DNA of 64,000 bases, from the IMG/VR virus record IMGVR_UViG_3300003322_000571, positions 248,001 through 312,000 of that record; one strand, given 5' to 3'. Below the pieces are notes generated by a model that made no database searches, was not told the DNA's origin, and saw nothing but the letters and a program-made list of their open reading frames with translations. Position numbers and translations under genes: made by a program. Of the stretch, positions 2 through 56,916 are shown in pieces (position 1 is the first letter of the stretch; each line of letters begins with the position of its first letter).

Positions 2-733
2 GATCGTGAAGCGATCAACAGAATTTGTCAGCTGCTTAAGCCCTTCAGACGTGCCGCCCATAGCATTAAACATCTGACGAGCACCGTTTGTGATGTTCGC
101 AAATGTCGTTGCATCAAGCTTAAACTTGAGAGCTTCGTTCTGCTGAGCAGCCATTGCATCAATCAAGTTCCCGGTACCTTCTACAAGACCACCGTTCGCT
201 TTATTTTGCGATAGAACTTGCTTGCCTGCTGTCGTTACGGCAGAGCCGAACCATGAAACGGCAAGGCTAGCCCAGTCAACATTCTTAACGAGGCCACTGA
301 ATGATTTGTTAACAGCGGTCGTTGCTGATTGCAGCCTCTGCGAAGCAGTGCGGTGTCTGTCAGCAGCATTAGTGACAGTACGGCCAAGACGCTCTAGTTC
401 ATCTGTAGGAGCGTTGTTTGCAATTGCAGCAGCTTGATCACGGTGAGCCTTTTCAAGAGCATGTGCCGCTTCAATCTCAGCCTTCTTTGCCTTGATTGCT
501 TCTTGGACAAGCTTTTCTTGCTGTTCGTTCAGTTTCCTACCAGCGCGCAATTGCTTCGAGAACTCAGCAAGGTCGTTTGTTGCGTCTTCACGCGCCCGAC
601 GTTGTGCTTCTTGTGCTCGAGCAATATTCGATTGACTTGCCAACAAACGTTCAATACCTTGAGTCAACAACTGCAGTTGTTGCGCGGTTGCTTGAAGCTG
701 TTGATTAAGTACTGTGGTGTTGACGTCTGCCAT
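2..733 (-). CDS. Tape-measure-like tail protein, N-terminal part (runs off the left edge; missed by the ORF track)
   Basis: Open frame from ATG at 733 (MADVNTTVLNQQLQATAQQLQLLTQGIERLL...) with no stop before base 1. Ala/Gln/Leu-rich helical composition. Divergent from the gp26/gp51-like genes and preceded by TAAATA (754-759, - strand). Confidence 0.65.
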   Translation of the reverse strand, partial: MADVNTTVLNQQLQATAQQLQLLTQGIERLLASQSNIARAQEAQRRAREDATNDLAEFSKQLRAGRKLNEQQEKLVQEAIKAKKAEIEAAHALEKAHRDQAAAIANNAPTDELERLGRTVTNAADRHRTASQRLQSATTAVNKSFSGLVKNVDWASLAVSWFGSAVTTAGKQVLSQNKANGGLVEGTGNLIDAMAAQQNEALKFKLDATTFANITNGARQMFNAMGGTSEGLKQLTNSVDRFTI

Positions 734-783: not shown

Positions 784-805
784 CGCAGTACTAAAAGGAG
801 TCTAT

Positions 806-1612
806 ATGACAGAAACAACAAACCCACTGTTGAAACGTTTGCGCATTCCCGGTGCAACATTTAGATTGCCGTCTCAGGGAATCCTGTATACAAACGGTGA
901 ACTAGATCAGTCGGTTAAGAATGGTGAGGTTGAAGTAAATCCGTTGACGGCAATTGATGAAATTGCTCTCAGCTCGTCCGATAAACTAATTTCCGGTAAG
1001 GCTGTTACGGAAGTAATCTCACGTTGTATTCCTCAGGTTTTGAAGCCAGAACTACTGCTCAATACCGACGTTGAATTCTTGCTTGTTGCACTTCGCATTG
1101 TTACATTTGGCGATGTGATTGAAGTGCAGTACCAACATACATGCGATGGTGCAAAGGAACATACGTACAAGGTTAACTTGCAAGCCATGTCGGCACGTGC
1201 TCGTCCTCTTGATCCGACTGCGATCACAAAGGAATACACGATCACATTGCCTAATGAACAAGTCGTTGTTCTTCGCCCGCTGATCTTCTCTGATGTAATT
1301 GCACTTGTTCAGTCACATGCAGAACTCAGCGGTAAGGAACGGAACGAGATCCCAGTAGATCAGGAAGAGCTGATGCAATTTGCTAACAAGTCGATTGCAG
1401 CTATTGTGATGTCAGTTGATGGAATCACAAACCAGGAGCAGATTCGTGAATGGGTTTCCGCATTGCCACTGGGCTATAAGAGGCAAATTGAGCAAACTGC
1501 TCATGCGGTAACAAGGTGGGGTGTAGATACGACGAGTAAGCAGGTATGTGCTGATTGCAAAGCGAAAATCGATGTCCCAGTGATTGTCAATCCAGTAAGT
1601 TTTTTTACCTAA
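806..1612 (+). CDS. T4 gp26-like baseplate hub / tail assembly chaperone
   Basis: Start moved to ATG 806 (RBS AAAGGAG at 794-800). Motifs LRIPGATFRLPSQG, EVEVNPLT..DE, D.EFLLVALRI.TFG.. and H-T-C/CADC metal-ligand pairs; ends NPVSFFT like gp26-family proteins. Confidence 0.8.
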   Translation: MTETTNPLLKRLRIPGATFRLPSQGILYTNGELDQSVKNGEVEVNPLTAIDEIALSSSDKLISGKAVTEVISRCIPQVLKPELLLNTDVEFLLVALRIVTFGDVIEVQYQHTCDGAKEHTYKVNLQAMSARARPLDPTAITKEYTITLPNEQVVVLRPLIFSDVIALVQSHAELSGKERNEIPVDQEELMQFANKSIAAIVMSVDGITNQEQIREWVSALPLGYKRQIEQTAHAVTRWGVDTTSKQVCADCKAKIDVPVIVNPVSFFT

Positions 1613-1839
1613 CACTTAGGTCAGGCGATCTGGATAACATCCGAAAGATGTTCGCCAGCTTGAAACAAGACATCGACAATCTGATACTCAATATTACTGA
1701 GCTGACGTACTTCATGCGAGGTGCGATTCAATACGACGACATGTTTGACATGTGTTTCCTAGAGCGGCAGAAGGTGAGTGAATTCATCGAAAAACGCCTG
1801 GAAGTAGAGAAGAAGAAACCACCATCGCAGCAATATTGA
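1600..1839 (+). CDS. T4 gp51-like hub assembly protein; probably the -1 frameshift extension of the gp26-like ORF
   Basis: The segment ITELTYFMRGAIQYDDMFDMCFLERQKVSEFIEKRLE resembles gp51-family C-termini. The frame is open through T TTT TTT at 1600-1606. The only ATG (1648) has a weak RBS. Confidence 0.65.
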   Translation, partial: FFYLTLRSGDLDNIRKMFASLKQDIDNLILNITELTYFMRGAIQYDDMFDMCFLERQKVSEFIEKRLEVEKKKPPSQQY

Positions 1840-2252
1840 GCTGAACTAAGTGATCTAGTCCTGCATGCCGGCATTATCAGCTTCGCAGAACTCGTAGGAG
1901 CGCTTCGCTTATCCTACGAGTTCTCGTTTCGTTTGAAGTACCTAGCGGAAATAAACGGGAAGCAATCACAATCCCTCCCCCGCATTTTCGTAGCTGACTG
2001 GAAGAACCTCACGGCCTGGGCGATACAGGCTTGCACTGATAGCGCAGCCCACGCTGGTCAACTTTTGCGGACTTCATACCGCGGGCTCGTTAGCTGTCGC
2101 TCTGTTCCCACTCCCGGACGAGTAAGGGTCTACGTCCGTGCGTTTCTACTTTAGCAGCTTGTTCCTGCTTGATTTGGAATTGTGTCGTCTAGAGTGCCGC
2201 GAAGGCAATTGAGGCTGTTATAACAACAGCTCTGATATGTCTGTGTAGAGTC
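1840..2252. ncRNA. Hairpin-dense non-coding element (structured RNA or replication origin; family not recognised)
   Basis: At least 7 stem-loops in ~410 nt, including a perfect 13-bp stem (1887-1899/1912-1924); no credible ORF. Confidence 0.5.
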
Positions 2253-3118: not shown

Positions 3119-4892
3119 CTTGCTCTCCTTGTTCGTCCTTGATATAACTGAACCCCTTTTCCATTTGAATCTTTAGGGTGTTCTTAAAAATACTGCCTAC
3201 TTCATCACGGTGTGATACGATGTACATCGACAAACCGTCAGTTTGAGCTTTCAGTTTCAGTAACTTTGCAGCAGCCTGAACACCAACAGCATCGAGACCG
3301 TGATCGAGCACTTCATCCAACATACACACGTTAACGCGATTACTCATACGTTCGCGAACGTCCTTAAAAGCGAGCGACAAGGCAATGTTGACGCGTGCTC
3401 GTTGACCAGCTGACAAGTTACCGAAATCTAGTTCTCGGCCAAACTGTGAAATTTTCGCTGTCATTTCATGTGTGAACTCAACGACATGCGGCAACCCTAG
3501 TTGCGACAAGTTTTCTCGAAGGTTCTTGTTCAGAACAGGGAGCTTTTGGTTGAGCAGTTCTTTACGAACAAAACTGTCCTTCTTCGTCAACAGCTTCAGC
3601 AGGAACTTTTGGTGTTCAATTTCACGCGTTGCCGTATTGACTTCGTCGTAATTGATTGGTTCCAGCTCAGCGTTCAGCAGTTCTTCATAAGGTTCGACAA
3701 ACGGATTGATCGCGTTTTCTTGCTCAACGATCTTTGCTCGGATGTTTTCCGTTTGGTTCTTGATGTTTTGTAGTTCTTCAAGGTCGTGTACAGTAACCTT
3801 TTCACGGACTTCACTAATCTTCGCACGTAGTTCCTCGAGTCGTTCCGCAGCTTTTTCAATCAACGGCTGTAGTTCTTCGATCTTTGTGAACAAAGAATCG
3901 TTCTCTGCGATCAAACCGTCGATCTTACCGGCTGCTTCTGCATAGTCCTGCAAGCAATACGGACACTTAGCATCACGCAAGTGTGACAACTGACTTTCGT
4001 TGTCTTGGTACTGCTTCATCAACTCTTTCATTAGACGTTGGTCAGCCTTCAGCTGTTCACTGAATGTATTGCGTTCTTCGGTCAAAGCTGAAAGCTCTGT
4101 GTGGAGAGCACGCTCGACATCGAAGTCGATTTGTTCAACACGATTCAGCTTGTCTTTCAGATTTTCAATCTGCTCGGTGTTCTGACGAATCCAAGAAGCT
4201 ACACGTGCTTTCGCGCTTTCAACCAGTGTCAAATGACGCGCGTGTTCCTTCTCAAGCAGTGCGACCTTCTCCTTCTTCATTTGAAGCGAGAGTTCCCAGT
4301 CCTTTGTTTCCTTCTTGAGTAGTTCAGCCTTTGCAGACAGTTCCGTAAGGCCAAATAGCTCTTCGATGATGTCTTTTTGGTTGGGGGCGGTTGCGTGCGT
4401 CTGAGGAAGATCAAGGAACGGTGTATGAGAAGCACTGAATACGACGATACGAACAAACAGCTCGTACGGAATACCAATTGTGTTTTCAATCAGCTTGTTC
4501 GTGCCAGCACTGTCAACCGTTTTATCTTCACCATTGACGTAGAAGTACGTGTTGTTGCCAGCTGCGCCGGCCTTTGTCTTGCGTTCACGAATGATCTTAT
4601 ACAGGTTGCCATCACCCGTTGAAAATTCAAGAGTGACAACCATGTTCTTCCCGTTAATGTTGTTAACGAGATTGTCCTTGGAAATTTTGCTGATCGGCTT
4701 GTCGTAGATAGCGTAAGTGAGTGCGTTAATCAACGCACTCTTACCTACACCGTTCGCACCAATACCCTCAGCAGTCTTGTCGAGATCCTCACCTACGATC
4801 AACGTAGTGCCGGGACGCTCGAGTTCGAAAATTGTAGTGTTGTTACCGTAGCTGAGGAAGTTCCTCAGCGTCAGTGTATGGAAACGAATCAT
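3099..4892 (-). CDS. 46: Recombination/repair nuclease ATPase subunit (T4 gp46 / SbcC / Rad50)
   Basis: Walker A NGVGKS, long coiled coil with CPYC zinc hook, signature LSAGQ, Walker B MLDEVLD, H-loop VSHR. Confidence 0.93.
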   Translation of the reverse strand: MIRFHTLTLRNFLSYGNNTTIFELERPGTTLIVGEDLDKTAEGIGANGVGKSALINALTYAIYDKPISKISKDNLVNNINGKNMVVTLEFSTGDGNLYKIIRERKTKAGAAGNNTYFYVNGEDKTVDSAGTNKLIENTIGIPYELFVRIVVFSASHTPFLDLPQTHATAPNQKDIIEELFGLTELSAKAELLKKETKDWELSLQMKKEKVALLEKEHARHLTLVESAKARVASWIRQNTEQIENLKDKLNRVEQIDFDVERALHTELSALTEERNTFSEQLKADQRLMKELMKQYQDNESQLSHLRDAKCPYCLQDYAEAAGKIDGLIAENDSLFTKIEELQPLIEKAAERLEELRAKISEVREKVTVHDLEELQNIKNQTENIRAKIVEQENAINPFVEPYEELLNAELEPINYDEVNTATREIEHQKFLLKLLTKKDSFVRKELLNQKLPVLNKNLRENLSQLGLPHVVEFTHEMTAKISQFGRELDFGNLSAGQRARVNIALSLAFKDVRERMSNRVNVCMLDEVLDHGLDAVGVQAAAKLLKLKAQTDGLSMYIVSHRDEVGSIFKNTLKIQMEKGFSYIKDEQGEQDDAERN

Positions 4893-6031
4893 GAGATTGT
4901 AAGGCGTTTGTATTGTTCAATCAGCAAATTGTTGTCGATGTGATCACTTTTGATTTCCTGGAGCATTTTGATCACCAAGTCATCAACGGTGCTGATTTCT
5001 TCGTCTTTGTTAGCGACCTCTTCCTTAGTCTCTTCGGAGACTTCAGTGCTGGTCAGCGCTTCATTTAGTTGTTGTGTTTCTTCGAGCGCGAACTCACGAA
5101 GCTTATACGCATCCATCATCTGCTGACGGATCAATGTACTTTCCTCGAAGGTAATAGGAACGTCAACCAAGCATTTTACACGTGCATTACGGTACATCGT
5201 CACTTTATCATCAAGTAGCTGTGACAGCTTAATCTTGAGGTACTTTGGACAGTCTGGCCAGTCGATGAACGTCATATCATCGTCGATGTGATCGTACGTC
5301 ATCATTCCGCGATTGAAGTCGCCAGCATCGCCAAAGTCCATTGGAAACGTGTTTCCCATGTAGACGATATTATCTTGCTCTTGTCGCTTGTGAAAGTGAC
5401 CGGATACGATATGCTTAGGACCTTTAAAGTCGGAAGCTGCAGGGCCAGTAGGCATTTTGACGTTGTAACCAGTAACGATAAAGCCCTGGAATTCAAAGTG
5501 ACCAGCCCAGAACGGAATCTTCAAGTACTCCTGAAGACCAGGGTACTCGTCGTGGAACATATAAGGGCTAAACAACGCTCCACCCTCAATCTGATCAATA
5601 ATTTTAGGTTCATCGATAACAACGAAATTGCTGAACTCTTTGAATGTAACGATCGAATGAATTTCACGCGAGTTGCGATGGTATAGGTCGTGGTTACCAA
5701 CAACGAAGAACACCGGCAAACCGAGATTGTTCAACATTGATGCGCCTTCGTGTGAACTATTCAACGTAGCAATGTTGATTGAACTACGGTTCTCGTTCCA
5801 GTCTCCTAGAAAACCAATGTAGTCAATCGTTGGATCTGCCTGTACTTGTTCGCAAAACCATGCGAGAAAGTCGAGGCAGTCTTGATTATGAATTGGTGAA
5901 TTGGACTTTTTACCGAAGTGGATATCGGTGAAAAAAGCTCCTTTACGGAGCTTCTTTGTCGATCGCTTTGGTGTGTAGGTGCAAGTATTATCTGGCACCA
6001 GACTAACACCGGGACTAACTAGGTTCGCCAT
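4889..6031 (-). CDS. 47: Recombination/repair nuclease subunit (T4 gp47 / SbcD / Mre11)
   Basis: Metallophosphoesterase motifs FTDIHFG, LGDW, VGNHD, GHFE and SGHFH; coupled to gp46 and gp55. Confidence 0.92.
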   Translation of the reverse strand: MANLVSPGVSLVPDNTCTYTPKRSTKKLRKGAFFTDIHFGKKSNSPIHNQDCLDFLAWFCEQVQADPTIDYIGFLGDWNENRSSINIATLNSSHEGASMLNNLGLPVFFVVGNHDLYHRNSREIHSIVTFKEFSNFVVIDEPKIIDQIEGGALFSPYMFHDEYPGLQEYLKIPFWAGHFEFQGFIVTGYNVKMPTGPAASDFKGPKHIVSGHFHKRQEQDNIVYMGNTFPMDFGDAGDFNRGMMTYDHIDDDMTFIDWPDCPKYLKIKLSQLLDDKVTMYRNARVKCLVDVPITFEESTLIRQQMMDAYKLREFALEETQQLNEALTSTEVSEETKEEVANKDEEISTVDDLVIKMLQEIKSDHIDNNLLIEQYKRLTIS

Positions 6032-6630
6032 TATTGTTCTTCTTGTTGTTCGGCAGGTTCTTCAGGAACAGGATCTTCTTCAACGGGGATAGGAGTGATC
6101 TCAACACCCTTTTCGTCGCGTTCGATTGGACCATCCACGAAACGACCAGAAGACAAGGAGTCAGCTGTGCTGCGAATTGTGTCGAAGTCTTGTTCGTCTT
6201 CAATGCCACGTGGGCCATCGTTACCGTCATCGTAACCAAACGAAGGGTTGAAACCTTGGTCTACTAGGAGAGCGTCGCGAACGTCACGTTGGCGCTTCTC
6301 GTGGTTAAGGTACTGGATAAACGAGTGCTTAATACACTGCGTAAAGAAAGCGAATGGATTGTTACTCTTGGCGGGATCGAAACTTTTCCAAGTTCGTACA
6401 AGCATCATAAGTGCGTATGCTTGCATATCCTCGTTGTACGAATAATTGACGAAGTTACCTTTCTTCGCATAATTCGAACACAGTAGCATCAACATTTTGG
6501 CTAGCGTCGGCGTCATTTCGCCTTTCGCTTTCGATGTGATTACTTCTGGCAAGAGATCCTTGTTGTTCAGGTAGAATACTTTACCTGCAACTGTAACGGA
6601 ATGCTTTGTTCTTGTTCTTGTTGTTGCCAT
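6031..6630 (-). CDS. 55: Late-transcription sigma factor (T4 gp55-like)
   Basis: YLNNKDLL..V, NFVNYSYNEDM, FDPAKSNNPFAFFTQCIKHSFIQYLNHEKRQ match the gp55 family; T4-like position next to 47/46. Confidence 0.9.
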   Translation of the reverse strand: MATTRTRTKHSVTVAGKVFYLNNKDLLPEVITSKAKGEMTPTLAKMLMLLCSNYAKKGNFVNYSYNEDMQAYALMMLVRTWKSFDPAKSNNPFAFFTQCIKHSFIQYLNHEKRQRDVRDALLVDQGFNPSFGYDDGNDGPRGIEDEQDFDTIRSTADSLSSGRFVDGPIERDEKGVEITPIPVEEDPVPEEPAEQQEEQ

Positions 6631-6666
6631 TTGTTTTACTACACCTTCTTGATGAGGTTTGGGTTA

Positions 6667-6695
6667 ATAGTACACGAATTTTTGAACGATGTCAA
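6667..6695 (-). promoter_or_regulatory. Sigma70-type early promoter for the gp55-47-46 operon
   Basis: - strand reads TTGACA-17 nt-TACTAT (6695-6690; 6672-6667). Confidence 0.7.
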
Positions 6696-6726
6696 CACAC
6701 TAAATACCTGACTTAAGGTCGAAAAT

Positions 6727-7515
6727 ATGGCAACAAACCTACAAAATGCGTACAAAGTACGTCTGATTCCTATCTCTAGCCTTGTCGGTGGAGGGGATCC
6801 AGACACGATTCGTAACAGTCAAGTAACGTTTGACGTCACTCCTACGTTTGTTGAATCGGGTTCAGTTGAATATACACCTGTCACGCCCGTCCATATGCCC
6901 GGATCAATGCAAGTGTACAAGCATACAAATTCTCGTACGTTTGAAATCACAGCACATTTGATCACACGCAATACTTCTGATGCGCTAAAGAACATGAAAT
7001 ATCTTCAGCGTCTTCGTGGTTGGAGGATGCCATACTTCGGACAATCAGATACACTGACGGATGCAAATCGTCAAGCTCGTAGTGAATCACAGCAGGCACG
7101 TGCGAATCAAGCTGGCACACCAACAGCTACGTTGTCTGATGCGGAACGCGATGCTGCAGTGCGTCAGCGTGTTCAAGATGAAGGGGTTCAATTGCGGGGC
7201 GCACCGCCTGACGTCCTTTATTTGTATGCGTATTCGAATGATCAGATCGATCAACGTAACAACACAGGTGGAATCTTCACGCCAGTCAACATCAACCGTG
7301 TTCCTGTCGTATTGACAAATCTGTCGATCACATTTCCCGAGGATGTTGACTACATTCCTGTATATGACCCTGCGAACAGTCCTGATGCGACGTTTACGCA
7401 GCCTTGGCCGGTCAAAGTTGATGTGGCAATTTCTCTGGTGGAGACCCATTCACCAAGTGAGTTCGAAAGGTTTGACCTTGCGGCGTACAAAAACGGTAAC
7501 CTTGCAATGTTCTGA
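6727..7515 (+). CDS. Baseplate/tail-tube initiator-like protein (gp48/gp54 / CIS tube-like)
   Basis: First gene of the baseplate operon after TAAATA (6701-6706). Pattern VTFDVTP...YKHTNSRTF.ITA...LRGWRMPY...PPDVL.L...VPVVLTNLSITFPEDVDY is typical of contractile-tail tube initiators. Confidence 0.6.
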   Translation: MATNLQNAYKVRLIPISSLVGGGDPDTIRNSQVTFDVTPTFVESGSVEYTPVTPVHMPGSMQVYKHTNSRTFEITAHLITRNTSDALKNMKYLQRLRGWRMPYFGQSDTLTDANRQARSESQQARANQAGTPTATLSDAERDAAVRQRVQDEGVQLRGAPPDVLYLYAYSNDQIDQRNNTGGIFTPVNINRVPVVLTNLSITFPEDVDYIPVYDPANSPDATFTQPWPVKVDVAISLVETHSPSEFERFDLAAYKNGNLAMF

Positions 7516-7526
7516 GGTGTTTATAT

Positions 7527-7853
7527 ATGGCTACTCAAATGCGATCTGACCAACAACAAGGTGGTCGTTACGTTCAAGGTGGTGAAGTGACTGTTATTGG
7601 TGGTAACAGACTAGGCTGGTGGGAACGTAAGATTTTTACAAAGTCCTCGTCCGACATTGCGTTCACGATCACTCCAAAATACGCTAACCGACCAGATCGT
7701 CTCGCATATGACCTGTACGGTCGTGCAAACCTTCAATGGTTCATTCTTCAATACAACAATGTGACTGATCTGTTCACTGACTTTGCAGTTGGTAAGCAGA
7801 TTGTTGTTCCTACAAAGTCGCGCCTATTCACAGAATTGCTCTCCAGGAGCTAA
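7527..7853 (+). CDS. Baseplate wedge LysM-like protein (T4 gp53 / P2 gpX-like)
   Basis: RPDRLAYDLYGRANLQWFILQYNN...G.QIVVP, a LysM-like motif; operon position fits. Confidence 0.8.
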   Translation: MATQMRSDQQQGGRYVQGGEVTVIGGNRLGWWERKIFTKSSSDIAFTITPKYANRPDRLAYDLYGRANLQWFILQYNNVTDLFTDFAVGKQIVVPTKSRLFTELLSRS

Positions 7854-7861
7854 TACTTTAT

Positions 7862-10834
7862 ATGTCAAATCCGTCAAACAGACTGGCGAAATTTCGCTCG
7901 TACAGCTATTACCATGTTCTTGCAATGTGTGATTGCAGCGCTACTGCAGACACACTTGCACTCAGTCAAGAATTGAATGTTTGGGATCACGCAACGCCTG
8001 AAACAGCTGTTCAGGATGATCGCGCTCAGTCAAAGAATCTTGGTAAGTATGCACCAAAACGACTTGAAGGATCTGGCAAGTACATCATTCTGATTAACGG
8101 TGCTACAGACGCTGCATACACTATTACCGAAGCAAAGTGGACATCTGCTACGGCTGCTAACGCTGTACAGGGTGATCGCGGTACGTCGATTGCAATCGAA
8201 GGATCACTACGTGTATCGGAACCGAAGGGTATTGCATTCCTGGACCAGGTTGTCCAGTGCAGTGTTGCACTTGGAGTCGATGCATCGCAAGTTGTTTTTG
8301 TTCTTAAGACTTTCTTCGTAGGACATGCTTACGATCCTGCACGTGGCGATTATCAAGATCATATTGTCGATGTTCCGCCAATTAACTTCATTGCATACGA
8401 TGTTACAGGTTCGTTTACAGAACAAGGCGGTGAGTATCAGATTCAGTTTGTGGCAGCTGGACATGGTGCTGCTCGCTTGCCGCAATATGGTAAGGCTGTT
8501 AATGCAATGAGCATTACCGCTGGTGATAGTCTTGAAGCTACATTGCGTAAGCTGCAAGACAACATCAATGAGAGTTACGATCTATACTTCGACTGTGTCT
8601 ACGAACAGATTCAATCGACAAACGGAACTGAAAAAGAAGAATTGCTTCGCTCTCTGCGCCGTGTTAACTATGTAATTGAGGTTGGACCGGATTATAAAGC
8701 GTCAAACGGCCAAGTAGCATATACTGTTACAAACCAGCCACAGCAATACAAAAATACTGCTGGTTGTAGTGACACAGCTCAAATCACATTCCCTGCTTCA
8801 TCCAGCATTGAGAGCGCAATCAACACAATTATGTTGATGAGCCCTCAAGTACAAGCCGATATGGCTAAGGGTGATACTGCATCTGGTGCGAAGTACGAAT
8901 ATAAGATTCATACCGCACTTGAATCAAAGCCCGTTGATGGCGCAAATGAAGATACGTTGGAATACACTGTATATTACCGTGTAGAACGATTTCTCGTTCC
9001 TAAGACAATCGCATACGATCCTGCGTTTCAAGCACTCGCACAAGATGACGAACAACTCAAGGCGGATCCACGTTACGATCAGATTCGTCGTAATCTGATC
9101 GAGTTTGACTACATCTATACCGGCAAGAACATCGATATTCTCGAGTTCGACATGAAGGTAAACATGGGTTTGGCGTATCTCCAAACCGCTACATTAGCAA
9201 ATACGTTTAAGAGCCAATTGGAACGTAGTGCAAACCGCCAGATGCAAGCGTCAACGCAAGACGTTAATACTCAAGGCGTTCGTTTTGGTGGCGCTCTCGT
9301 TCAAACGCCGGTGTTCTTTGGTTCACAGGTGAGAGTTCCGAACCTAATTAACCAGCAAAACGCTGGTAATGCTATTCAGTCGGCATATACATTGACAAAG
9401 CATGCTTCTTTGGAAGTTGCTGAAGCGTCTATGCGTATCATCGGTAATGAACAACTGCTGGGTTCAACGAATAGGACATCATCACCAGCGAATGTTATCG
9501 CATCTGCGTCACGTAGTCAGACGACAAATACGCCTGATTCCGCTGATTTTAAAGATTGGACACTTGTTCCTGCGTTTGTCAAAGTTAATATCAAGATGCC
9601 TCGTGATAATGACGATTTTAACTTATTCACGGGTTCATCGAAAACTGGAAATCCTAACGACGCTGGTGCAACTGATTACGCGCGTGATTTCTGGTTTGAT
9701 GGATACTATTACGTGTACGGAATCGAACATGCGTTTGAAAATGGAGAATTCACACAGAATCTCCAAATGATCGGTATTCCGAAGAAATCTGCGTTTGATG
9801 CAACGAAGAACAATTCCAGCCGTGAAGTTAACATTACACAAGACGTAGGTCGTTGCTTTGACAACCAAGTGGGATGTGGTACAGCAGGTTCTTCATCTGC
9901 AGCTGGTGGAAGCACTACAGCTCCGCATACAGCTGTTCCTGAAATGCCACCTTCTGGTACTACCGCCCCTACGAACACTGCCGACGCTAACACTTTGAAC
10001 CGTAGTGCTCGCGATCCTGCAAATGTACGTGGTTGGACTAATGCATCACCATCAGTCAAAGCTGCAATCATCGAAGCTTCTAACCGTTACGGTGTAGACA
10101 TCGTGATCATGGCGCAATTTGCTGCTAAGGAATCGTCGTTCAACCCTAAAGCACATCCACCAGGTTCTGCGTCGAGTGCTACAGGTTTGTACCAGTTCCT
10201 CAAAGCTACATGGAACGGACTTGTTAAACAAGGTAAGGTTCTTGGTTTGAACGCAACTGATGGTGTTGTTAACACTCCAGGCAAGACGCCTGCAGCAAAC
10301 GACCCTCGTTACAATGCTCAGTTGAATGCGTACGCTGGCGCTGCATTCTTGCGTGATAATGCAAGAGCGATTGGTTCGACGGATGCAGGTGATTTGTATC
10401 TCGCTCACTTCCTTGGCCCTGAAACGGCACGAAAAGTGATTGCAAGTTGCAACTCTAACGGAGGAAATAGTAAGCTGTCAGCTGTTCTTGGAACTCAACA
10501 AGCAGCGGACATTGCGGCTGCAAACCCAACGATTGTTAACGCTAACACTACATGTGCAAGTCTTCGTGCTTGGGCGGCGACATCAATGGCACGTTTGTTG
10601 ATTAATCAGACACAGACGGCTAAACAAACAGCTCCTGTCCAGTCAGTAGTTCCACCATCGCAAGCTGCTGGTGATGCTGCTCGTACGGCTCCAGCTACGG
10701 CACGAACAGCAGATAAGGCTGTTGCAGCTGTTCAAAACTGCAATACACAATCTGCTAAGAAGGATGTCAATCCTTGCGGACCTACAGCACAAACGACAAA
10801 TACAACGTCTAAGCCAACTGCGACAACACAATAA
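7862..10834 (+). CDS. Baseplate hub protein (gp27 / P2 gpD-like) fused to a lytic transglycosylase domain
   Basis: Hub-like N-terminal ~640 aa ending GYYYVYGIEHAFENGEFTQNL. C-terminal SLT motifs AIIEASNRYGVD...AKESSFNP, SATGLYQF, YLAHFLG. Confidence 0.8.
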   Translation: MSNPSNRLAKFRSYSYYHVLAMCDCSATADTLALSQELNVWDHATPETAVQDDRAQSKNLGKYAPKRLEGSGKYIILINGATDAAYTITEAKWTSATAANAVQGDRGTSIAIEGSLRVSEPKGIAFLDQVVQCSVALGVDASQVVFVLKTFFVGHAYDPARGDYQDHIVDVPPINFIAYDVTGSFTEQGGEYQIQFVAAGHGAARLPQYGKAVNAMSITAGDSLEATLRKLQDNINESYDLYFDCVYEQIQSTNGTEKEELLRSLRRVNYVIEVGPDYKASNGQVAYTVTNQPQQYKNTAGCSDTAQITFPASSSIESAINTIMLMSPQVQADMAKGDTASGAKYEYKIHTALESKPVDGANEDTLEYTVYYRVERFLVPKTIAYDPAFQALAQDDEQLKADPRYDQIRRNLIEFDYIYTGKNIDILEFDMKVNMGLAYLQTATLANTFKSQLERSANRQMQASTQDVNTQGVRFGGALVQTPVFFGSQVRVPNLINQQNAGNAIQSAYTLTKHASLEVAEASMRIIGNEQLLGSTNRTSSPANVIASASRSQTTNTPDSADFKDWTLVPAFVKVNIKMPRDNDDFNLFTGSSKTGNPNDAGATDYARDFWFDGYYYVYGIEHAFENGEFTQNLQMIGIPKKSAFDATKNNSSREVNITQDVGRCFDNQVGCGTAGSSSAAGGSTTAPHTAVPEMPPSGTTAPTNTADANTLNRSARDPANVRGWTNASPSVKAAIIEASNRYGVDIVIMAQFAAKESSFNPKAHPPGSASSATGLYQFLKATWNGLVKQGKVLGLNATDGVVNTPGKTPAANDPRYNAQLNAYAGAAFLRDNARAIGSTDAGDLYLAHFLGPETARKVIASCNSNGGNSKLSAVLGTQQAADIAAANPTIVNANTTCASLRAWAATSMARLLINQTQTAKQTAPVQSVVPPSQAAGDAARTAPATARTADKAVAAVQNCNTQSAKKDVNPCGPTAQTTNTTSKPTATTQ

Positions 10835-12822: not shown

Positions 12823-15800
12823 TGAGCAGACTAGTTGCCCGTGCAGAAACATGGGAACGCGCGTATGAAGCGTTCCAAAATATCAACTTTGCTGCGTTTG
12901 ACTACGATACAGTTAAACGCAGCTTGATTGATTACATCAAGCTGTACTTCCCAGAAACATTCAACGACTTTATTGAGTCGTCTGAATTCGTTGCAGTTAT
13001 TGAAGTATTTGCATACATCGCTGAAATCATGGCGTATCGCCTTGATGTCAATGCGCATGAAAACTTCATTTCAACAGCTCAGCGTAAGGATTCGATCCTA
13101 CGCTTGGCTAAACTCGTCTCTTATTCAGCATCACGTCCACTTCCTTCTCGCGGTCTTGTCAAACTTCAGTCAGTTTCAACGACTGAATCTGTAGTTGATA
13201 CAAACGGTCTTGATCTTGCTGGTCGTACAATCCGTTGGAATGACGTTAGCAATGCCTCATGGAAAGATCAATTCATCCTTGTGATGAACCGCGTTATGGA
13301 ACAGCAGTTTGGTTCTGTTGGTCCTACCGATCGTTTCCAGATTCAAGACGTTTTGTTTGAACTGTACTCGTGGAACCTTGTTCCGCTTGCTACTGGTGTA
13401 TTCCCGTTCAATGCAAACGTCAGCGGTCAGTCACTGCCTATGGAACTTGTTTCCACGGCGTATGACACCTCTAACGGAATTATCGAGCGCCGTCCACAAA
13501 ACAATTCAAACTTCACGTTCCTGTATGGTCAAGACGGTCTTGGAGACGCTTCTGCGACAACAGGTTTCTTCTGCTATGCAAAGCAAGGCCAGTTGCAACG
13601 TTTCCGTACTACGTTTGACGGCGTAACACCAAATCAAACGTATGATATCGGTGCACAGAATGTAAACGAAACGGATATCTGGTTGAACAATGTGGATCCT
13701 ACAACGGGAGCCACACTTGATCAGCCTTCTGTTCTGCCGTACCGCAACTCAAAGCTTGGAAAATCGGGTGAATGGGTTCAGGTAGACGTAGCACACTCGC
13801 AAAACGTTATTTTCAACACGAACCCTCGTCGCAACAAGTACGAAGTAGAAACTCGCGATGAAAACCGTGCTAGGTTGATCTTCGGCGACGGTGAGTTCGC
13901 TGACATTCCGTCGGGTGCATTTGACATTTGGGCACGTACGTCTGTAGATCAAGACATTGTTATCCCTCAGTCGGCTGTATCAAATCAAACATCTTCGTTT
14001 ACGTACGTTGATTCGTTTGGTCGTACGCAGACGTTCACGTTCACATATTCACTTGTTAACACGCTGCAGAACGGTTCTGCAGCTGAGGATATCGAACACA
14101 TTCGCAACGTAGCTCCAGGCACGTATTCAACACAGGACCGTATGGTTAACGGCCCAGACTACAATACGTATCCGCTGCAAGATCCTTCGATCATGAAGCT
14201 GCGTGCAATTAACCGTACGTTCGCTGGCGAGTCGAAGTATATTACGTGGCATGACTCTTCTGGTACGTACGAAAACGTCAAGATTTTCAGTGACGATGGC
14301 GTATTGTACTTTAAACAACGACAAGACGTAACAACGACGCCGGTTGTTGATACAAACGTGCTGATTTCTTCATACATTCAGCCGTTGTTGTCAACACCTG
14401 AGTTGTACATGAACATCATCAGCGCTGGTGTGCCAATTGGCAATTACCGTCGTCAGTTCAACACAGATGAAATCGATCGTATCACAACAGAGATCACGAC
14501 GAACATGGCTCCTGTGATGATTTTGATGTACTACAACACGGCGACGTTTGAATGGTACGCTATCAAAAACAGTGACGATCCAGCTGTCAAGTTTACAGGT
14601 TGGCCTAACAACTACATCACAACTCCTCTGATCTCTATTGAACAGACGAGCATCTTCGAGACTTCGTATTACGTAACTCGTAATACGAAGGAATTCATGA
14701 TGTACAGTGAGACAACAGAATTCTGGAATACGAATGATGGTCAAACTGTGATTGACTACGATACGTTGAATTCTGACAGTGACAAGATTGTTGTACTTCA
14801 GGCGAACACAAACTACAACCGTAACGCTATTTTGACTTCGAACGTCGAATTCAACGTTGTGTCGCTTGGTACAGTTGAATCTGGAACTGATGTTGGTTTG
14901 CCAGATACGTCAAACGTAATCATTGTTCCAACGGATACAAACGGAGACGGTGTTCCTGACAACTTGTCGATTGAAACTTGGAACAATCCTCAAGGGATTG
15001 CTGACATCGTTAAGCCAAAGATCATTGCTGACGTTAGTGCAGGTAATCAGTCTGCGTTCGATCCGTTGTCTGCAGGTATTGAGATTACATTGCCTGTGTA
15101 CTACGTTGTCGATCCGTCACTTGTAACATCAACAGCCATTGGCAACACAGTATACAAAACGAACGACGTTGAAGTATATGCGCCGGCACCTGACTACGGT
15201 AGCCTAATGAAGCAGGCAGGAGATTCTTCGTCTCCAAACTGGTCCGACTGGGCAACGATTACAAACGACGGTTCATATGTGTCAAACAAGATCCGTGTGT
15301 TGAACAACCGTACGAATACGTCTCTTGGTAGTAGTGTTAACGTGTTGACTGAGCTTGTCAAGGTTAAAGAATATGTGTACTTCACGCGTGAAACGAAACT
15401 CGATCCTTGGGTATTGTCACCGACGACACCTCAAACGCTAGCTTCGTTTGTGACAGACGTTAATTCGTTCCTTGTTCCTGATCCTTCGTCTAGCTCTGGT
15501 TACCGTCCTTTGACGATTGCAGAAGCTGATGCAGGTACGAATACAGACTACGAAAACGCTCGTACAATTAAGCGTTACGAAGGTCGTGGTGGTTTGAACT
15601 TCGCGTGGTTCCACTTCTCTCCACGTTACTACTTGGTTGATCCTTCGCCAACGAATATTATTGACATGTACGTAATTACAAAGGGTTACTACATCTCGTT
15701 GAAGCGTTGGTTGGAAGATCCGTTGGCCGCCGCTCCGTCGCTTCCTACGCCGTTGGATCTTCGTACGTCATACAACTACATGCTTGACAACAAAATGATC

Positions 15801-16205
15801 TCTGATACGGTGATCTTGCATCCAGGCAAAGTCAAGTTGTTGTTCGGAACGAAAGCAGCAGCTCCGTTGCAAATGACGTTCAAGGTTGTTCGTTCGCAAG
15901 GCAGTACGATGACCGACAATCAGATCAAGACGCAGATTGTGTCTACGATTCGCAACTTCTTTGATATGTCGTACTGGGAGTTTGGTGAAACGTTCTATTT
16001 CGTTGAAATGGCAACAGCGATTATGGATACTCTGCAAGGCCAATTGAGCTCGATTGTTCCTGTACCAACATACGCGAATAATCAGTTTGGTGATGGCTTC
16101 CAGGTATTTGCTCGTGAAGACGAGATTTTGTATCCTGACATCACAGTTGACAACATCGAGATTGTTGAAAGTTACACAACGACGAATCTCCGTATGAACG
16201 GGTAA
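12822..16205 (+). CDS. 6: Baseplate wedge protein gp6 (baseplate J-like), enlarged
   Basis: DYDTVKRSLIDYIK..FPE.FNDFIESS, ENFISTAQRKDSILRLAKLVSY, IFGDGEF..IP, TQDRMVNGPDY; follows gp25. Confidence 0.87.
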   Translation: MSRLVARAETWERAYEAFQNINFAAFDYDTVKRSLIDYIKLYFPETFNDFIESSEFVAVIEVFAYIAEIMAYRLDVNAHENFISTAQRKDSILRLAKLVSYSASRPLPSRGLVKLQSVSTTESVVDTNGLDLAGRTIRWNDVSNASWKDQFILVMNRVMEQQFGSVGPTDRFQIQDVLFELYSWNLVPLATGVFPFNANVSGQSLPMELVSTAYDTSNGIIERRPQNNSNFTFLYGQDGLGDASATTGFFCYAKQGQLQRFRTTFDGVTPNQTYDIGAQNVNETDIWLNNVDPTTGATLDQPSVLPYRNSKLGKSGEWVQVDVAHSQNVIFNTNPRRNKYEVETRDENRARLIFGDGEFADIPSGAFDIWARTSVDQDIVIPQSAVSNQTSSFTYVDSFGRTQTFTFTYSLVNTLQNGSAAEDIEHIRNVAPGTYSTQDRMVNGPDYNTYPLQDPSIMKLRAINRTFAGESKYITWHDSSGTYENVKIFSDDGVLYFKQRQDVTTTPVVDTNVLISSYIQPLLSTPELYMNIISAGVPIGNYRRQFNTDEIDRITTEITTNMAPVMILMYYNTATFEWYAIKNSDDPAVKFTGWPNNYITTPLISIEQTSIFETSYYVTRNTKEFMMYSETTEFWNTNDGQTVIDYDTLNSDSDKIVVLQANTNYNRNAILTSNVEFNVVSLGTVESGTDVGLPDTSNVIIVPTDTNGDGVPDNLSIETWNNPQGIADIVKPKIIADVSAGNQSAFDPLSAGIEITLPVYYVVDPSLVTSTAIGNTVYKTNDVEVYAPAPDYGSLMKQAGDSSSPNWSDWATITNDGSYVSNKIRVLNNRTNTSLGSSVNVLTELVKVKEYVYFTRETKLDPWVLSPTTPQTLASFVTDVNSFLVPDPSSSSGYRPLTIAEADAGTNTDYENARTIKRYEGRGGLNFAWFHFSPRYYLVDPSPTNIIDMYVITKGYYISLKRWLEDPLAAAPSLPTPLDLRTSYNYMLDNKMISDTVILHPGKVKLLFGTKAAAPLQMTFKVVRSQGSTMTDNQIKTQIVSTIRNFFDMSYWEFGETFYFVEMATAIMDTLQGQLSSIVPVPTYANNQFGDGFQVFAREDEILYPDITVDNIEIVESYTTTNLRMNG

Positions 16206-16273
16206 AACATCGCGAAAAATTGGACGGGAACCTTCATATAAATATCTGACACAGATATTACAGAGGGTTTCCC

Positions 16274-19200
16274 GTGGCAAATTTCAGCGACAACAAAAAA
16301 CCAGCGCTTACCGTTTCTAACCTCCTTCCTGAAGTCAATAGGTCGGATGTTAACGGTTCCGTCTTTAGCACAGCGTTTGATCGTCTGCTTACTAAAGACG
16401 ACTCTGCTCGCGTTGCTGGTTATATCGGCCAGGGCAACCCTAACGCCGTAATCAATCGTCAGATCAAAGAAGCTACGCCTCACCGTCAAGCCTATCAGTT
16501 GGCACCTACAATGGTGACGACTGTAGGTACAGAAACTTCTGCGCTTTCCTTCGAAGCATTCAACAGCCAACTGGAATTGATGGGTGTTGACATTGACCGC
16601 TACAAGAAGTGGGGTTCTACGCTTCAGTTCAACTGGGTTCCTCCAGTGAACATCGACATGCTCGTCAACTATTCTGACTACTACTGGGTTCCTGCAACTC
16701 GCGGTGATGGTCAGCAATATTTGACGATTGAAAGCCCATGCACGAAAGCACAGAGCGCGAAACAAACGTTCATGGCTGTCGTTGAAGCTCGTGGCTCAGA
16801 ATTCCCTCTCAAGTCGATCAACTACGTTGAAAACCAGTTTGTGATCGAATCACAGATGGCTGACATTTTCAAGACGGGATTTGTGTTCCAAACGACGAAT
16901 ACATCCGCTGTTAGCCTGAACAATAAGGACTGGACTGTAGATACGTCTTCGTACGATTTCCAGACGAATTTGACAACGATCACAGTGATCGAACCGATCA
17001 GCATTGTTCAAAACATTGCTCCTGTCGCTTCGTTCGTGGGCCAGTGGTGGTACAACACGACTGATAATCAACTGTATCAATGGACTGGTGCAGCATGGGT
17101 GATCGTGTCTAAGGTTCAAGTCGCTGACTTGTCTCTTGCTGCAACAATTGCTTTGTTCCAGAAAGCGGCAAACTGTGCTTGCTATGGTAGCGAAGGTTGG
17201 GATACAGGTCCTTGGGACATTGATGAATGGGATTCCACTTCTACGTGTGACATTCCACTACCATCACCATGGGCTGATCAGAACCGTTGGGTTCACAAAT
17301 CACAAGTCCAGTCGTCAGCTACTGCAAAGCGTGCTACACTTCCAATCCTTGAGTACGGTAGTTTCGTTGAACTCAATACATGGGTTCAACGCGATCGTCA
17401 ATGGAAGTACCGCTCGAGCACGTTGAAGACATTTGCCGCGACAGATGCAGCACCAACGCGCTTCGAACTTGAACCAATCAAGGGATATGCTGTTGCTAAC
17501 GTCAACGGGCAGTGGAACATCTACCTGTTCTCAAAAAGCCAAACGGTTAACCGTGACATCGACCACACAGCGACGTTTGTGCCAGGTTACAAGTTTGCGA
17601 TCAAAGATGACACAGGTTCTGCAGCAATCTACACTGTTTTGCGTTCCGAATATCGTGAATTGAACGGTACAGATCAAGCGTTTATTAATGCTGTTGTTGG
17701 TACTGGTTGGATGTGCACAGTAGTTATTCTTGAAGAATCAACTTTCTCGTCCGCTGTTCAAAGTGGTGGTATCAATAACATCCGTATTGAGCCGTTGAAG
17801 ACGAGTCAAGGAGACACGTGGAACGGTTACCATGCCCACTGGTTGCTTGACGTAGAAGCTACGACAACGGTTGCAACAGCAAACCACGCACCAACAGTTT
17901 ACGGTGAGCGTGACATTGAAGACCCTGCGGTGTATTCTATTCCGCCTGTCGGTTTCTCACCACAAGTTAGTGTGATCGCAATTGGTAATACGTATCAAGA
18001 GTTCACAGCAAACTTCGCTGGAATCACACATATTGATCTCGCCGACAAGTTTAAGTATGACCCAGCTAATCCTACCGTGTATGCAACACCTGGTAGTGAT
18101 GAACTTCGTCTATACATCAACGGTCAACGTCAGTATCTAAACTACACGGAAGTAGTTGCTACAGGTAGCCCTAACTATACAGTTGTCGGTAATGCTGTTC
18201 AGACATCACAGACAATCAGCTATGTCACGGGAATTGATCTTTCTGTCGCGCTCAATTTGAACGACGTTGTTCGTATTGAAGTTGGCCCGGCAGCGTACGA
18301 AGATATGGGCTGGTATGCTGTTCCTGTTCGTACAGTTGAAGATGAAGCTGCGTTCATTGTTGCTACTGCTGCAGGTACACAACCAGCTTATGTTAGCTTG
18401 ACGCAGTACGGTCTGCAGGAACAACAGAAGGTTGCTATCAACCAGTATCCACAGTTCAACATGTACGATGTTGTTACAGGGGAAGTTGTTGGTGCGTCTC
18501 CGTTGTTTGCATTCCAGGAAGGCAGTGACTATCCAATCACTCCTGCAATCCAACGCCGTATCGTCAAAGATGCAACTGGCAAAGAGTTCGGGTTCGAACA
18601 GTTCCTTGTTGATCGTTCGAACAACATCATGTATGCATATCGCAACACGTCAGTACAACTTCCTTACTGGTTTAACACGACTGATCAAAAAGTGTATCAG
18701 TGGAATAACCGTGCTTGGACAGATCAATTCTTGATGGAACTTCCATCAGGAGCTATTGTCGCTCGTACTGCAGTTGCAGCAGCAATCGACCCTGTTGAGT
18801 TGCATGACGTTGATCGTGCTTTGTGGTATGATACAACGAACGAAAAGTTGTTCTACCGTAATGTAGCGACAACAGCGTGGGTTGAAATTACGGGTGTTAC
18901 GTCAGCGTCTGCTGACCCAACACTAATGACTGTATGGCGTCACGGTAAGACGGATCAACAGGCTGTCCCGCAATATGTTGATAAGAATCGTAATCCAATT
19001 ACTGTCGGTAGTCCGGACGGTAGCTGGGGCGTCGTCGACCAATGGATGTACAACAGCGAGCACAAGAACTACAAGGACATTACGTACTCGCAGCTTGTAA
19101 CGCACTTCTCATCGATTATCAACGCTCAGCCAGCAGTTCCCGGTTTGCCGGGGAACGGTGCGTTCACTCTGTTGCAATCGAATTACGATTACGGTCTTGG

Positions 19201-46721: not shown

Positions 46722-46864
46722 AATGGTTCCTTGAGGCAGTTGATGAAATCGCTTTGTTTGTTTCAAAGCGGGCTTAACATGTAGCTCACTTTACTGATAT
46801 TCTTTTTACCTTCAACGTTGTTGACCCTACCTGTTTTTAAGACAATGTGCGTCAAGGAGCTTAC

Positions 46865-47314
46865 ATGAAACTAAGACAAATTATCGCTCATATGGATGCA
46901 GCTCATGTATACGCAGGGCTATCGTATTGTAATCGACGTAAGGTCGGTTCTGTCATCGTCAAAGATAACCGAATCATCTCTATCGGCTACAATGGTACAC
47001 CACCCGGTGCATGTAACTGCTGTGAAGGTGAGGACGGCAAAACACTACCAAATGTGATTCACGCTGAGGACAATGCGATCCGCAAGCTGAAGAATTCGCC
47101 TGAAACAGGCGTTGGTGCTACGATGTTCATCACAACAGCACCGTGTGAACCATGCGCTCAAATGATTATTGACGCTGGGATTGTTCACGTTGTTTACGAC
47201 CAAAGTTATACGAATGACCACGGTATTGTCTTCCTACGCGAACGAGGCGTAACTGTTGACAATATTACCCAATTAGTGGATAGTGCTCTCATTGATAACA
47301 AGGAACAACAATGA
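46865..47314 (+). CDS. cd: dCMP deaminase
   Basis: Start ATG 46865 (RBS AAGGAG). SYCNRRKVGSVIV, GYNGTP, HAEDNAI, APCEPCAQMI zinc motifs. Confidence 0.93.
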   Translation: MKLRQIIAHMDAAHVYAGLSYCNRRKVGSVIVKDNRIISIGYNGTPPGACNCCEGEDGKTLPNVIHAEDNAIRKLKNSPETGVGATMFITTAPCEPCAQMIIDAGIVHVVYDQSYTNDHGIVFLRERGVTVDNITQLVDSALIDNKEQQ

Positions 47315-47826
47315 CACAATTGATTTTGCCGGAACAATACGAAATCAACGTTGACTTAGACGGCGTTCTCGTTGACTTCCAAGCAAAGGCGTTCGAAATC
47401 GCTGGCTTGCGTCCGTCTGATGATCCTGCTGACAAGCAACTCCGTCGTGACTTCTGGAAGAGGATCGAAATGCATGTCCGTAAGGGCGGCTCGTTCTTCG
47501 AAGACATGAAGCCGATGGTTGATGCTTTTGTCTTGTGGGACTACATCAAGCACCGTAGTCCGACGATTTGTTCTGCGACCGGCCACGTTGTCGGTGCAGC
47601 GCAGGAAAAGCGCAACTGGGTTCGTCGCCATCTTGGCGTTGAAACCGCTAACTCTGCTCGGTTTGTTCGTGATGGCCGCATGAAGGCTCAATACGCACAT
47701 CCGCTCGCAATCCTGATCGATGACCGCAAGAAGGTTCTCGATCCGTGGATTGAAGCTGGTGGTATTGGTATTCTTCATACGTCTGCTGACCGTACGATCG
47801 CACAACTTAAGGAGATGGGTCTGTGA
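47311..47826 (+). CDS. HAD-family 5'(3')-deoxyribonucleotidase-like protein
   Basis: DLDGVLVDF, CSAT, K..WV..HL, K, LIDDR..VL.PW..AGGIGILH. Confidence 0.87.
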   Translation: MTQLILPEQYEINVDLDGVLVDFQAKAFEIAGLRPSDDPADKQLRRDFWKRIEMHVRKGGSFFEDMKPMVDAFVLWDYIKHRSPTICSATGHVVGAAQEKRNWVRRHLGVETANSARFVRDGRMKAQYAHPLAILIDDRKKVLDPWIEAGGIGILHTSADRTIAQLKEMGL

Positions 47827-52094: not shown

Positions 52095-53974
52095 TCTTTA
52101 CGAGCGTCAGAGTCGTTGCCGAATAGCAGTTCCATAACTTGTTTTGTGTCCTCGTCTGCGACAATCGGGATCATTGTGTCAGTTTCACCGGACAAGCACA
52201 TATCCCAATCTTCCTTGCTCATAGAGCCCAGACCCTTGTAATATCGTACTTCATAACCCTTGTACTTGTCTTTGACTTTTTCGTAATCGGCACGGCGTGG
52301 GAAATGGACGCGTGTTTTCCCTTTAACCAAGCAGACGTTAGGAGCAATCATTCGGAACAAGAACGGTGGCTGTTTTGGATCGAGCAGTTCAGGCCAGAAC
52401 TTGTAGAATAGGTTTGTCAACAATGTGAAGATGTCGGAGCCGTCGTAGTCAGCGTCGGTTGCGATGATCACTTGACCGAAGTTGAGTTCACTACGAACAG
52501 CTTTCTTACCAGGGATCAGTCCAATCGCTTGCAACATGTCCTTGACTTTGACCATCTTCAGTACTTGCGCAGGAGTAGCGTCGTACACGTTGTTGATCTT
52601 ACCAGTCAATGCAAACGCAGCCGTTGTTTTTGGATCGCGAGACATCGAGATCTGTCCTGCAGCAGAATTACCTTCTGTGATCAGAACGCGACATTCTGCA
52701 CGGTTCGTGCTCGTTGCATCGAGCAGACCGTCAACCTTCTTACCGATTTTTTTCGCGTGTTCCTTTTGTGCATCAGCATCTGCTTGAGCGTGGTGGCGGT
52801 TGTTGGCACGGAACAGAATATCTTCAAGCCACAACTCCGAACGCTTAGCGAACATCTTCCACTGAGCGTCGATCATTCCCGTCATTTCCTTGCGGAGATC
52901 GGGACCTGTCAGGCGGGTTTTAGCTTGACTATCGTATTCTGGATTACGGACTTTAAGGTTTGCAAGAACAAGCAATCCACGACGAATGTCGTTGTTTGTA
53001 ATCTCGGACTTAGTCTTCTTAGCAGCTTTTTCCAGGTGATTTTGTACACGGCTATACAGTGCGTTGAGGAACTGCGTGTTGCATTTACCGCCGTCAAACA
53101 ACAACGAACTGTTGACCCAAGTGAACATCTGTTCGTCGATACCGTCATGTGCATTAAGGACAACAAACACTTCGCCAACGAGTGTTGGCTCGTTGACTTC
53201 AAAGCAGTAGAACTGTTTATCGCCAGCGATCTGAGCGACGAGGTCAAGCAGTCCCTTCTTGAACCTGTACTTTTCACCGTTATATTCAACAGTGACATCC
53301 GGGTTTGTCATCGCAATTTCGATAGCGCGATTGCGGACAAGTTCGTCAGGAAGGGTTACATTCTTGAATACGAGCGGATCGAGCTGGAATGATACCTGTG
53401 TCCCGGAAGGTGTATTGTCAGGAACAGAAGTGATTTTTGGTGATGAGGCCTTATCAGCACCGTCAACGAATCGCTGAACGTACTTTTTGCCGTCGCGGTG
53501 AATGACAACGTCAAATTCACTCGAGCAATAGTTAGTACATGCTGCGCCAACACCGTTTTGACCGATGACGCCGACTTCCTTATCATCAGTGAAGTTGCGT
53601 CCGGCTTTCAAGCTACCGAGAGCGACTTCTGGTGTGCGCTTCCCTGTAGCGTGCATATCAATCGGAATGCCGCGGCCGTTATCGCCAACAGAATACCAGC
53701 CAATGTCTGGCTTAGCGTCAAACTTGAGTAGTTTGATTCGAGATGTTGTTTGGGAGAATTCGTCGAGCGCGTTATCAACGACTTCGTTGATAGCTTTGAA
53801 TACAGACGGGATGAATTCGACTTCGCGAATTTCTAGTTTATCCGCCGTAAGCAGTGGAATTCGATAGGTGGTGGGGTTCATGTTCCCCAGGTAGATCTGA
53901 GTTCGTAGACGAACGTGATCCCTATCCGACAATGCAACGATGTCATTGCCGGTGTAGTTCTTGTCCTTAGCCAT
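52076..53974 (-). CDS. 39: Type II topoisomerase ATPase/TOPRIM subunit (T4 gp39+60 / GyrB-like)
   Basis: EVVDNALDE, DNGRGIP, GQNGVGA (GHKL); TEGNSA, LTGKINN, ATDADYDG, YYKGLG (TOPRIM). Confidence 0.95.
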   Translation of the reverse strand: MAKDKNYTGNDIVALSDRDHVRLRTQIYLGNMNPTTYRIPLLTADKLEIREVEFIPSVFKAINEVVDNALDEFSQTTSRIKLLKFDAKPDIGWYSVGDNGRGIPIDMHATGKRTPEVALGSLKAGRNFTDDKEVGVIGQNGVGAACTNYCSSEFDVVIHRDGKKYVQRFVDGADKASSPKITSVPDNTPSGTQVSFQLDPLVFKNVTLPDELVRNRAIEIAMTNPDVTVEYNGEKYRFKKGLLDLVAQIAGDKQFYCFEVNEPTLVGEVFVVLNAHDGIDEQMFTWVNSSLLFDGGKCNTQFLNALYSRVQNHLEKAAKKTKSEITNNDIRRGLLVLANLKVRNPEYDSQAKTRLTGPDLRKEMTGMIDAQWKMFAKRSELWLEDILFRANNRHHAQADADAQKEHAKKIGKKVDGLLDATSTNRAECRVLITEGNSAAGQISMSRDPKTTAAFALTGKINNVYDATPAQVLKMVKVKDMLQAIGLIPGKKAVRSELNFGQVIIATDADYDGSDIFTLLTNLFYKFWPELLDPKQPPFLFRMIAPNVCLVKGKTRVHFPRRADYEKVKDKYKGYEVRYYKGLGSMSKEDWDMCLSGETDTMIPIVADEDTKQVMELLFGNDSDARKEWLTAK

Positions 53975-56455: not shown

Positions 56456-56539
56456 TGGTTCTCCTTTGCTCTGTACGAAACTATTTACGCTGGAGAAATA
56501 GCAGTGATCTTTACCCGTATACCCAGGGACCGGAAATGA

Positions 56540-56563
56540 AGGAAGGCGCCGAAGCGCCTTCCT
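56540..56563 (-). terminator. Terminator hairpin with UUCG loop downstream of tmRNA
   Basis: - strand reads AGGAAGGCGC-TTCG-GCGCCTTCCT-TCATTT. Confidence 0.75.
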
Positions 56564-56888: not shown

Positions 56889-56916
56889 TCTATTTAAGCA
56901 TAGAACCCTAAAACTA

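Follow-up and report, generated by a model that had tools for sequence, protein, structure and literature searches.

A conserved slippery heptamer at the end of a T4-related jumbo phage gp26-like gene suggests that one gene encodes both a short and a long hub-assembly protein

A single gp26/gp51-family gene with an in-phase slippery heptamer

To determine how a T4-related jumbo phage from a root metagenome encodes its baseplate hub assembly chaperones, we analysed a 64,000-nt stretch (hereafter the window; positions 248,001-312,000) of the complete 350,089-bp virus record IMGVR_UViG_3300003322_000571, which carries terminal repeats. The only PF12322 gene in this genome ends with a slippery T TTT TTT site that most likely allows ribosomes to produce a short, gp26-like protein and a longer, gp51-like protein. 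The same signal was conserved in most of the T4-related lineages sampled. Our confidence in this explanation is high, although it rests on comparative evidence, and no RNA, ribosome-profiling or proteomic data exist for this phage. The coordinates of all features are presented in Table 1.

Table 1 Features of the gp26/gp51-family locus in the window.
Position	Strand	Feature	Details
795..800	+	Shine-Dalgarno sequence AAGGAG	5 nt before ATG 806; read from the sequence
806..1612	+	0-frame ORF, short gp26-like product (baseplate hub assembly protein family)	268 aa; stop TAA at 1610-1612
1600..1606	+	Slippery heptamer T TTT TTT	X XXY YYZ in the 0 frame, AG[T TTT TTT] ACC TAA
1606..1839	+	-1 frame extension, probable equivalent of the C-terminal tail of gp51	77 codons plus TGA (1837-1839)
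806..1839	+	Predicted frameshift product, probable gp51 equivalent	join(806..1606, 1606..1839); 344 aa; junction ...PVSFF/YLTLR
1607..1663	+	Predicted RNA stem-loops 3' of the heptamer, role uncertain	5-bp hairpin starting 2 nt after the heptamer, then a larger stem from 15 nt after it
1888..1935	+	12-bp perfect hairpin followed by a T-rich stretch, likely transcription terminator of the gp26/51 unit	1888-1899 pairing with 1912-1923; read by eye
2..733	-	5' part of the divergently transcribed tape-measure gene, which runs off the window	Full gene at L128:2433-4733(-); full product 767 aa

The 0-frame protein matched PF12322 (T4_baseplate; 3.9e-15, 56.6 bits against a cut-off of 24.5) over residues 45-267 and profile positions 19-218 of 219, and phrog_150 ('baseplate hub'; 9.5e-19) over profile positions 5-232 of 282. 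Structural matches in BFVD to 'baseplate hub assembly protein, T4-like' were also found (E 1e-19). The C-terminal CxxC ... FF motif was retained, with C248, C251, F266 and F267 invariant across our alignments, whilst the first Cys pair (CPxC in most members) was reduced to a single Cys. The gene ends CCA GTA AGT TTT TTT ACC TAA. A sequence-only reading had proposed that this heptamer fuses the gp26-like and gp51-like ORFs, and the coordinates, frames and junction peptide it gave were all correct. Runs of T7/A7 were approximately tenfold rarer across both strands of the window than in shuffled sequence (2 observed against 20.0 +/- 6.0 expected), and one of the two is this site, demonstrating that the run is not a by-product of base composition.

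We considered whether a homopolymer sequencing error or a recent frameshift mutation had split one gene, given that homopolymers are error-prone and that the product of the two frames resembles a single T4 protein. This is very improbable. The contig from the source run was identical, a roughly 92% identical relative from another study spanned the site with no gap, and the same frame relationship was found in dozens of independent isolates and assemblies from many laboratories. In addition, none of the 60 non-self homologous proteins found was longer than 286 aa.

The heptamer and its -1 ORF are conserved across divergent phages

Using tblastn, the -1 peptide was found in RsoM2USA, XacN1, Xoo-sp13, CM1 and RAS14. 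In four of these five the match starts at the last base of the gp26 match, and in RsoM2USA it starts three residues later in the same -1 frame. We further investigated the 3' end of the PF12322 gene in progressively more distant phages. As a search of IMG/VR with the window protein found no confirmed relative, these came from a phage collection, a word search and contig look-ups. This included RsoM2USA, XacN1, Xoo-sp13 and RAS14; PA5oct, RaK2, Atu_ph07 and Phosso; nine metagenome contigs at 38-59% protein identity or lower; 121Q, CBB, Munch and a Vibrio jumbo phage; the cyanophages P-SSM2 and S-PM2; and the pelagiphage HTVC008M, Sinorhizobium phage phiM12 and vibriophage KVP40. All 26 loci, like the window, carry T TTT TTT or T TTT TTC in the same phase on the conserved C-terminal Phe-Phe, followed by a -1 ORF of 57-82 codons that aligns with that of the window. 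The same was true of 80/80 further cyanophage contigs from IMG/VR. However, Vi01, which has no canonical heptamer, and Campylobacter phage NCTC12673, which has two tandem genes, did not fit this simple pattern.

Three details argue for selection on the nucleotide signal rather than only on the protein. The codon before FF always ends in T although it encodes S, A, V, R, H, N, Y or D, the first Phe codon is always TTT, and the number of 0-frame codons left after the heptamer varies freely, from 0 to 11. FF is conserved at the protein level even in T4 gp26, so part of the T-run conservation reflects coding. However, T4-type gene 26, whose phages have a separate gene 51, keeps FF but reads GAG TTC TTT or GAG TTT TTT, which is not slippery. 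U_UU.U_UU.Y falls in the most efficient class of -1 motifs measured in E. coli (PMC4066793).

The extension is unlikely to be translated independently

An alternative is that the small ORF is translated on its own, either from ATG 1648 or by reinitiation after the gp26 stop, with the T-run reflecting only the conserved Phe-Phe. In support of this, an ATG occupies the same place in the extension in all 8 members of the window's subgroup, and cyanophage and KVP40 records annotate a separate small 'gp51' starting within a few bases of the gp26 stop, so that in these phages the small ORF could also be made on its own by coupled reinitiation. Nevertheless, we consider this explanation improbable. 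The first ATG in the -1 ORF varies from codon 2 to 57 across lineages and is absent in PA5oct, ATG 1648 has no good Shine-Dalgarno sequence, and none is conserved before the ATG of the subgroup. The -1 peptide is conserved from the slip site onward ([YF]xx[IL][RK]S.D...), including the 14 codons before ATG 1648, and independent initiation does not require the invariant T before the FF codons.

A switch in codon phase was also apparent in the close relative, a contig from an unrelated rhizosphere study that covers 1494-1834 with 26 substitutions. Of its substitutions at 1525-1588, 10 of 13 fall on 0-frame third positions. There are none at 1589-1628, whilst all eight at 1629-1656 fall on -1-frame third positions, six of which lie upstream of ATG 1648. 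More distant relatives showed the same shift in periodicity, less sharply.

Ribosomal slippage is the most likely mechanism

In the most likely mechanism, most ribosomes read AGT TTT TTT ACC and stop at the TAA, whilst a fraction slip back one base when two tRNA-Phe occupy TTT TTT (P and A sites), re-pair with TTT TTT in the -1 frame and continue for 77 codons. No stimulatory RNA element could be established for the window. The 70 nt after the heptamer fold better than shuffles (MFE -18 kcal/mol, z -2.56), but the predicted stems do not start 5-9 nt downstream, and the eight subgroup members share only a weak hairpin that coding can explain, with no covarying structure. The cyanophage contigs were too alike for covariation to be informative. 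Interestingly, several other lineages, including XacN1, Xoo-sp13, PA5oct, P-SSM2 and S-PM2, have strong hairpins 6-10 nt downstream (z from -2.3 to -4.7), as ribosomal -1 sites do.

The same fusion protein could instead arise by transcriptional slippage, whereby RNA polymerase adds one U on the T-run. Runs of 7 to 9 occur here (T7 in the window, T8 in the sequence labelled L132, T9 in RsoM2USA), U7 runs are avoided in genes partly for this reason (PMC4066793), and no conserved ribosomal stimulator was found in the window's subgroup. Transcriptional slippage could contribute in the window's lineage. However, it appears unlikely as the general explanation, as many lineages, including all the cyanophages, have only T6 followed by C, which is a canonical ribosomal heptamer but a short run for polymerase slippage.

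Relationship of the two predicted products to T4 gp26 and gp51

T4 gp51 (249 aa) is itself a PF12322 protein over residues 1-201 (3.9e-52) with a 48-residue tail, and gp26 and gp51 are therefore paralogues. Like T4 gp26, which ends three residues after the conserved FF, the 0-frame product of the window ends just after this motif. The sequence-only reading had described the small -1 ORF as a gp51-like helix bundle; as T4 gp51 is a gp26-like domain plus a tail, the gp51 equivalent would be the fused 344-aa product and not the small ORF.

Homology between the extension and the gp51 tail was supported by profile-profile comparison. The jumbo-phage extension profile matched the T4-type gp51-tail profile (hhalign probability 79%, E 1.5e-5) with a score of 28.2, against 9.9 +/- 2.0 (maximum 17.3) for 200 column shuffles, although an earlier single-sequence comparison of the extension alignment with T4 gp51 was weak (probability 1.5%). 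A profile of 18 fused products aligned with the T4-type gp51 profile through to its C-terminus (probability 93%, E 2.5e-7), and the window protein stops at position 232 of phrog_150, where the gp51 tail occupies positions 229-281. Direct HMMER scans of the window's extension hit no family in Pfam, PHROGs or NCBIfam, in a Pfam library without PF28602, which is listed on gp51 homologues. The extension is too diverged to hit phrog_634 directly and is about 30 residues longer than the tail of gp51.

The -1 ORFs of cyanophages (S-PM2, P-SSM2) and KVP40, which span 57-60 codons after an in-phase T TTT TTC, are what their records call 'gp51'. These match phrog_634 and the T4 gp51 tail, the cyanophage -1 ORF at an hhalign probability of 96.5% (7.8e-10). 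The records annotate two independent genes with no slippage, and that of KVP40 already notes that its small ORF resembles the C-terminus of T4 gp51.

Whole-genome scans identified one PF12322 gene in the window genome and in the ten heptamer-bearing genomes counted (XacN1, RsoM2USA, PA5oct, RaK2, Atu_ph07, S-PM2, P-SSM2, KVP40, HTVC008M and phiM12), compared to two, divergently transcribed, in T4. The simplest reading is one recoded gene giving a short and a long form, at a ratio set by frameshift efficiency, in most of the T4 superfamily, and two genes (26 and 51) in T4 proper. It is slightly more likely than not that the frameshift is ancestral to this superfamily (jumbo RaK2-, PA5oct-, XacN1- and Atu_ph07-like phages, cyanophages and pelagiphages, phiM12 and KVP40), that genes 26 and 51 are a later duplication that hard-wired the two forms, and that gp26/gp51 are the long-missing G/GT-type tape-measure (gp29) chaperones of T4-like phages, giving the enigmatic 'catalytic' gp51 a concrete role.

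Programmed -1 frameshifting in tail assembly chaperone genes is a hallmark of long-tailed phages. To our knowledge it has not been described for T4-like phages, and no description of a frameshift in gp26, gp51 or T4-like baseplate hub genes was found in the full texts that could be searched, which excluded subscription-only papers. The main text of the CBB virion proteome paper does not mention these ORFs, and none of the sampled GenBank records annotates slippage here. If the frameshift is real, records such as those sampled, which annotate two genes or leave the -1 ORF unannotated, would need re-annotation, and the small 'gp51' ORFs of cyanophages and KVP40 would be explained as frameshift extensions.

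Genomic context and a possible tail assembly chaperone role

The neighbouring gene encodes a tape-measure protein, matching two tail length tape measure families (phrog_167, 6.4e-13; phrog_794, 2e-10), with the T4-type portal gene beyond it. The sequence-only reading had drawn an analogy with the lambda gpG/gpGT chaperones, in which a short and a C-terminally extended protein appear to be made from one start by -1 slippage near the end of the short ORF (Xu, Hendrix & Duda 2004). A comparable role is plausible but inferred. The window gene likewise lies beside the tape-measure gene, but it is divergent from it rather than upstream on the same strand, it belongs to a different protein family (PF12322, about 270 aa, with a Cys-rich motif), and the heptamer is T TTT TTY rather than G GGA AAG. 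In KVP40 and cyanophages the pair does lie directly upstream of a large ORF on the same strand, but that ORF has no family match.

AlphaFold models were confident for the window's gp26 (pLDDT 85) and for a T4-type gp51 (pLDDT 92), the latter with a predicted tail of four helices at 196-249. No solved structure matched gp51 by sequence, Foldseek against the PDB gave no significant hit for the gp26 model (E 0.96), and a wide structural search with the gp51 model returned only generic helix-loop-helix matches to its tail. However, the HK97 tail assembly chaperone (2ob9) was the top hit to the gp26 model in two searches, with Z 6.5 over 98 of 107 residues and Z 6.1 at rank 1 of 48,161 chains, followed by YqbN (3klu; Z 5.7), which is probably an XkdN-type tail chaperone. 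As these scores fall below the level regarded as safe (Z of 8), this similarity is only suggestive. Finally, the likely terminator, which was not flagged by a simple terminator scan, and a 0.4-kb gap lie downstream of the -1 ORF, before a RuvC-like gene on the other strand.

Additional features of the window and of related PF12322 loci

The phage encodes a tmRNA gene. This was identified by its match to the Rfam beta_tmRNA model (126 bits, E 4e-38), with a further match to the permuted tmRNA model, and ARAGORN predicted the tag peptide ANEGNFRLAA. The betaproteobacterial type fits the closest cultured relative being a Ralstonia phage. Only one other T7/A7 run was found in the 64-kb window, in the context ...CCGATTTTTTTCGCG.... 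The 0.4-kb stretch between the -1 ORF and the RuvC-like resolvase gene lacked a convincing ORF, and no Rfam family or tRNA was found there. This stretch begins with a perfect 12-bp hairpin followed by a T-rich tail.

Coordinates of additional features in the window and in related phages
Source	Feature	Coordinates	Strand
Window	PF12322 gene with reduced first Cys pair (protein residues about 110-120)	806-1612	
Window	Stretch without a convincing ORF	1840-2252	
Window	Perfect 12-bp hairpin	1888-1923	
Window	RuvC-like resolvase gene	2253-2732	-
Window	Only other T7/A7 run	52747-52753	+
Window	tmRNA gene	56537-56906	-
Salmonella phage Vi01, record	Single PF12322 gene and gp51-tail-like peptide in the -1 frame	46764-47522 and downstream	
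Campylobacter phage NCTC12673, record	Two tandem PF12322-like genes	15536-16650	
KVP40, locus L127	Large ORF (656 aa)	2113-143	-
P-SSM2, locus L026	Large ORF (529 aa)	4384-5973	
S-PM2, locus L027	Large ORF (1167 aa)	5357-8860	

In the window protein and in RsoM2USA, the first Cys pair of the family's presumed four-Cys site (CPxC in most members) is reduced to a single Cys with nearby His, whilst the C-terminal CxxC is kept. In Salmonella phage Vi01, the PF12322 gene ends GAA ATT TTC ATT TAA with no canonical heptamer. However, a gp51-tail-like peptide is nevertheless open in the -1 frame from just before the stop, which may represent a non-canonical shift site or a different expression route in Ackermannviridae. 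In Campylobacter phage NCTC12673, the second of the two tandem PF12322-like genes is interrupted by a TAA and no slippery heptamer is present. This may be an independent two-gene solution like that of T4.

In KVP40 and the cyanophages P-SSM2 and S-PM2 the gp26/gp51 pair is followed on the same strand by a large ORF. Of these, the KVP40 and P-SSM2 ORFs, the two that were scanned, have no Pfam match. These large ORFs could be the tape-measure/gp29 equivalents, which would reproduce the lambda G-T-H gene order.
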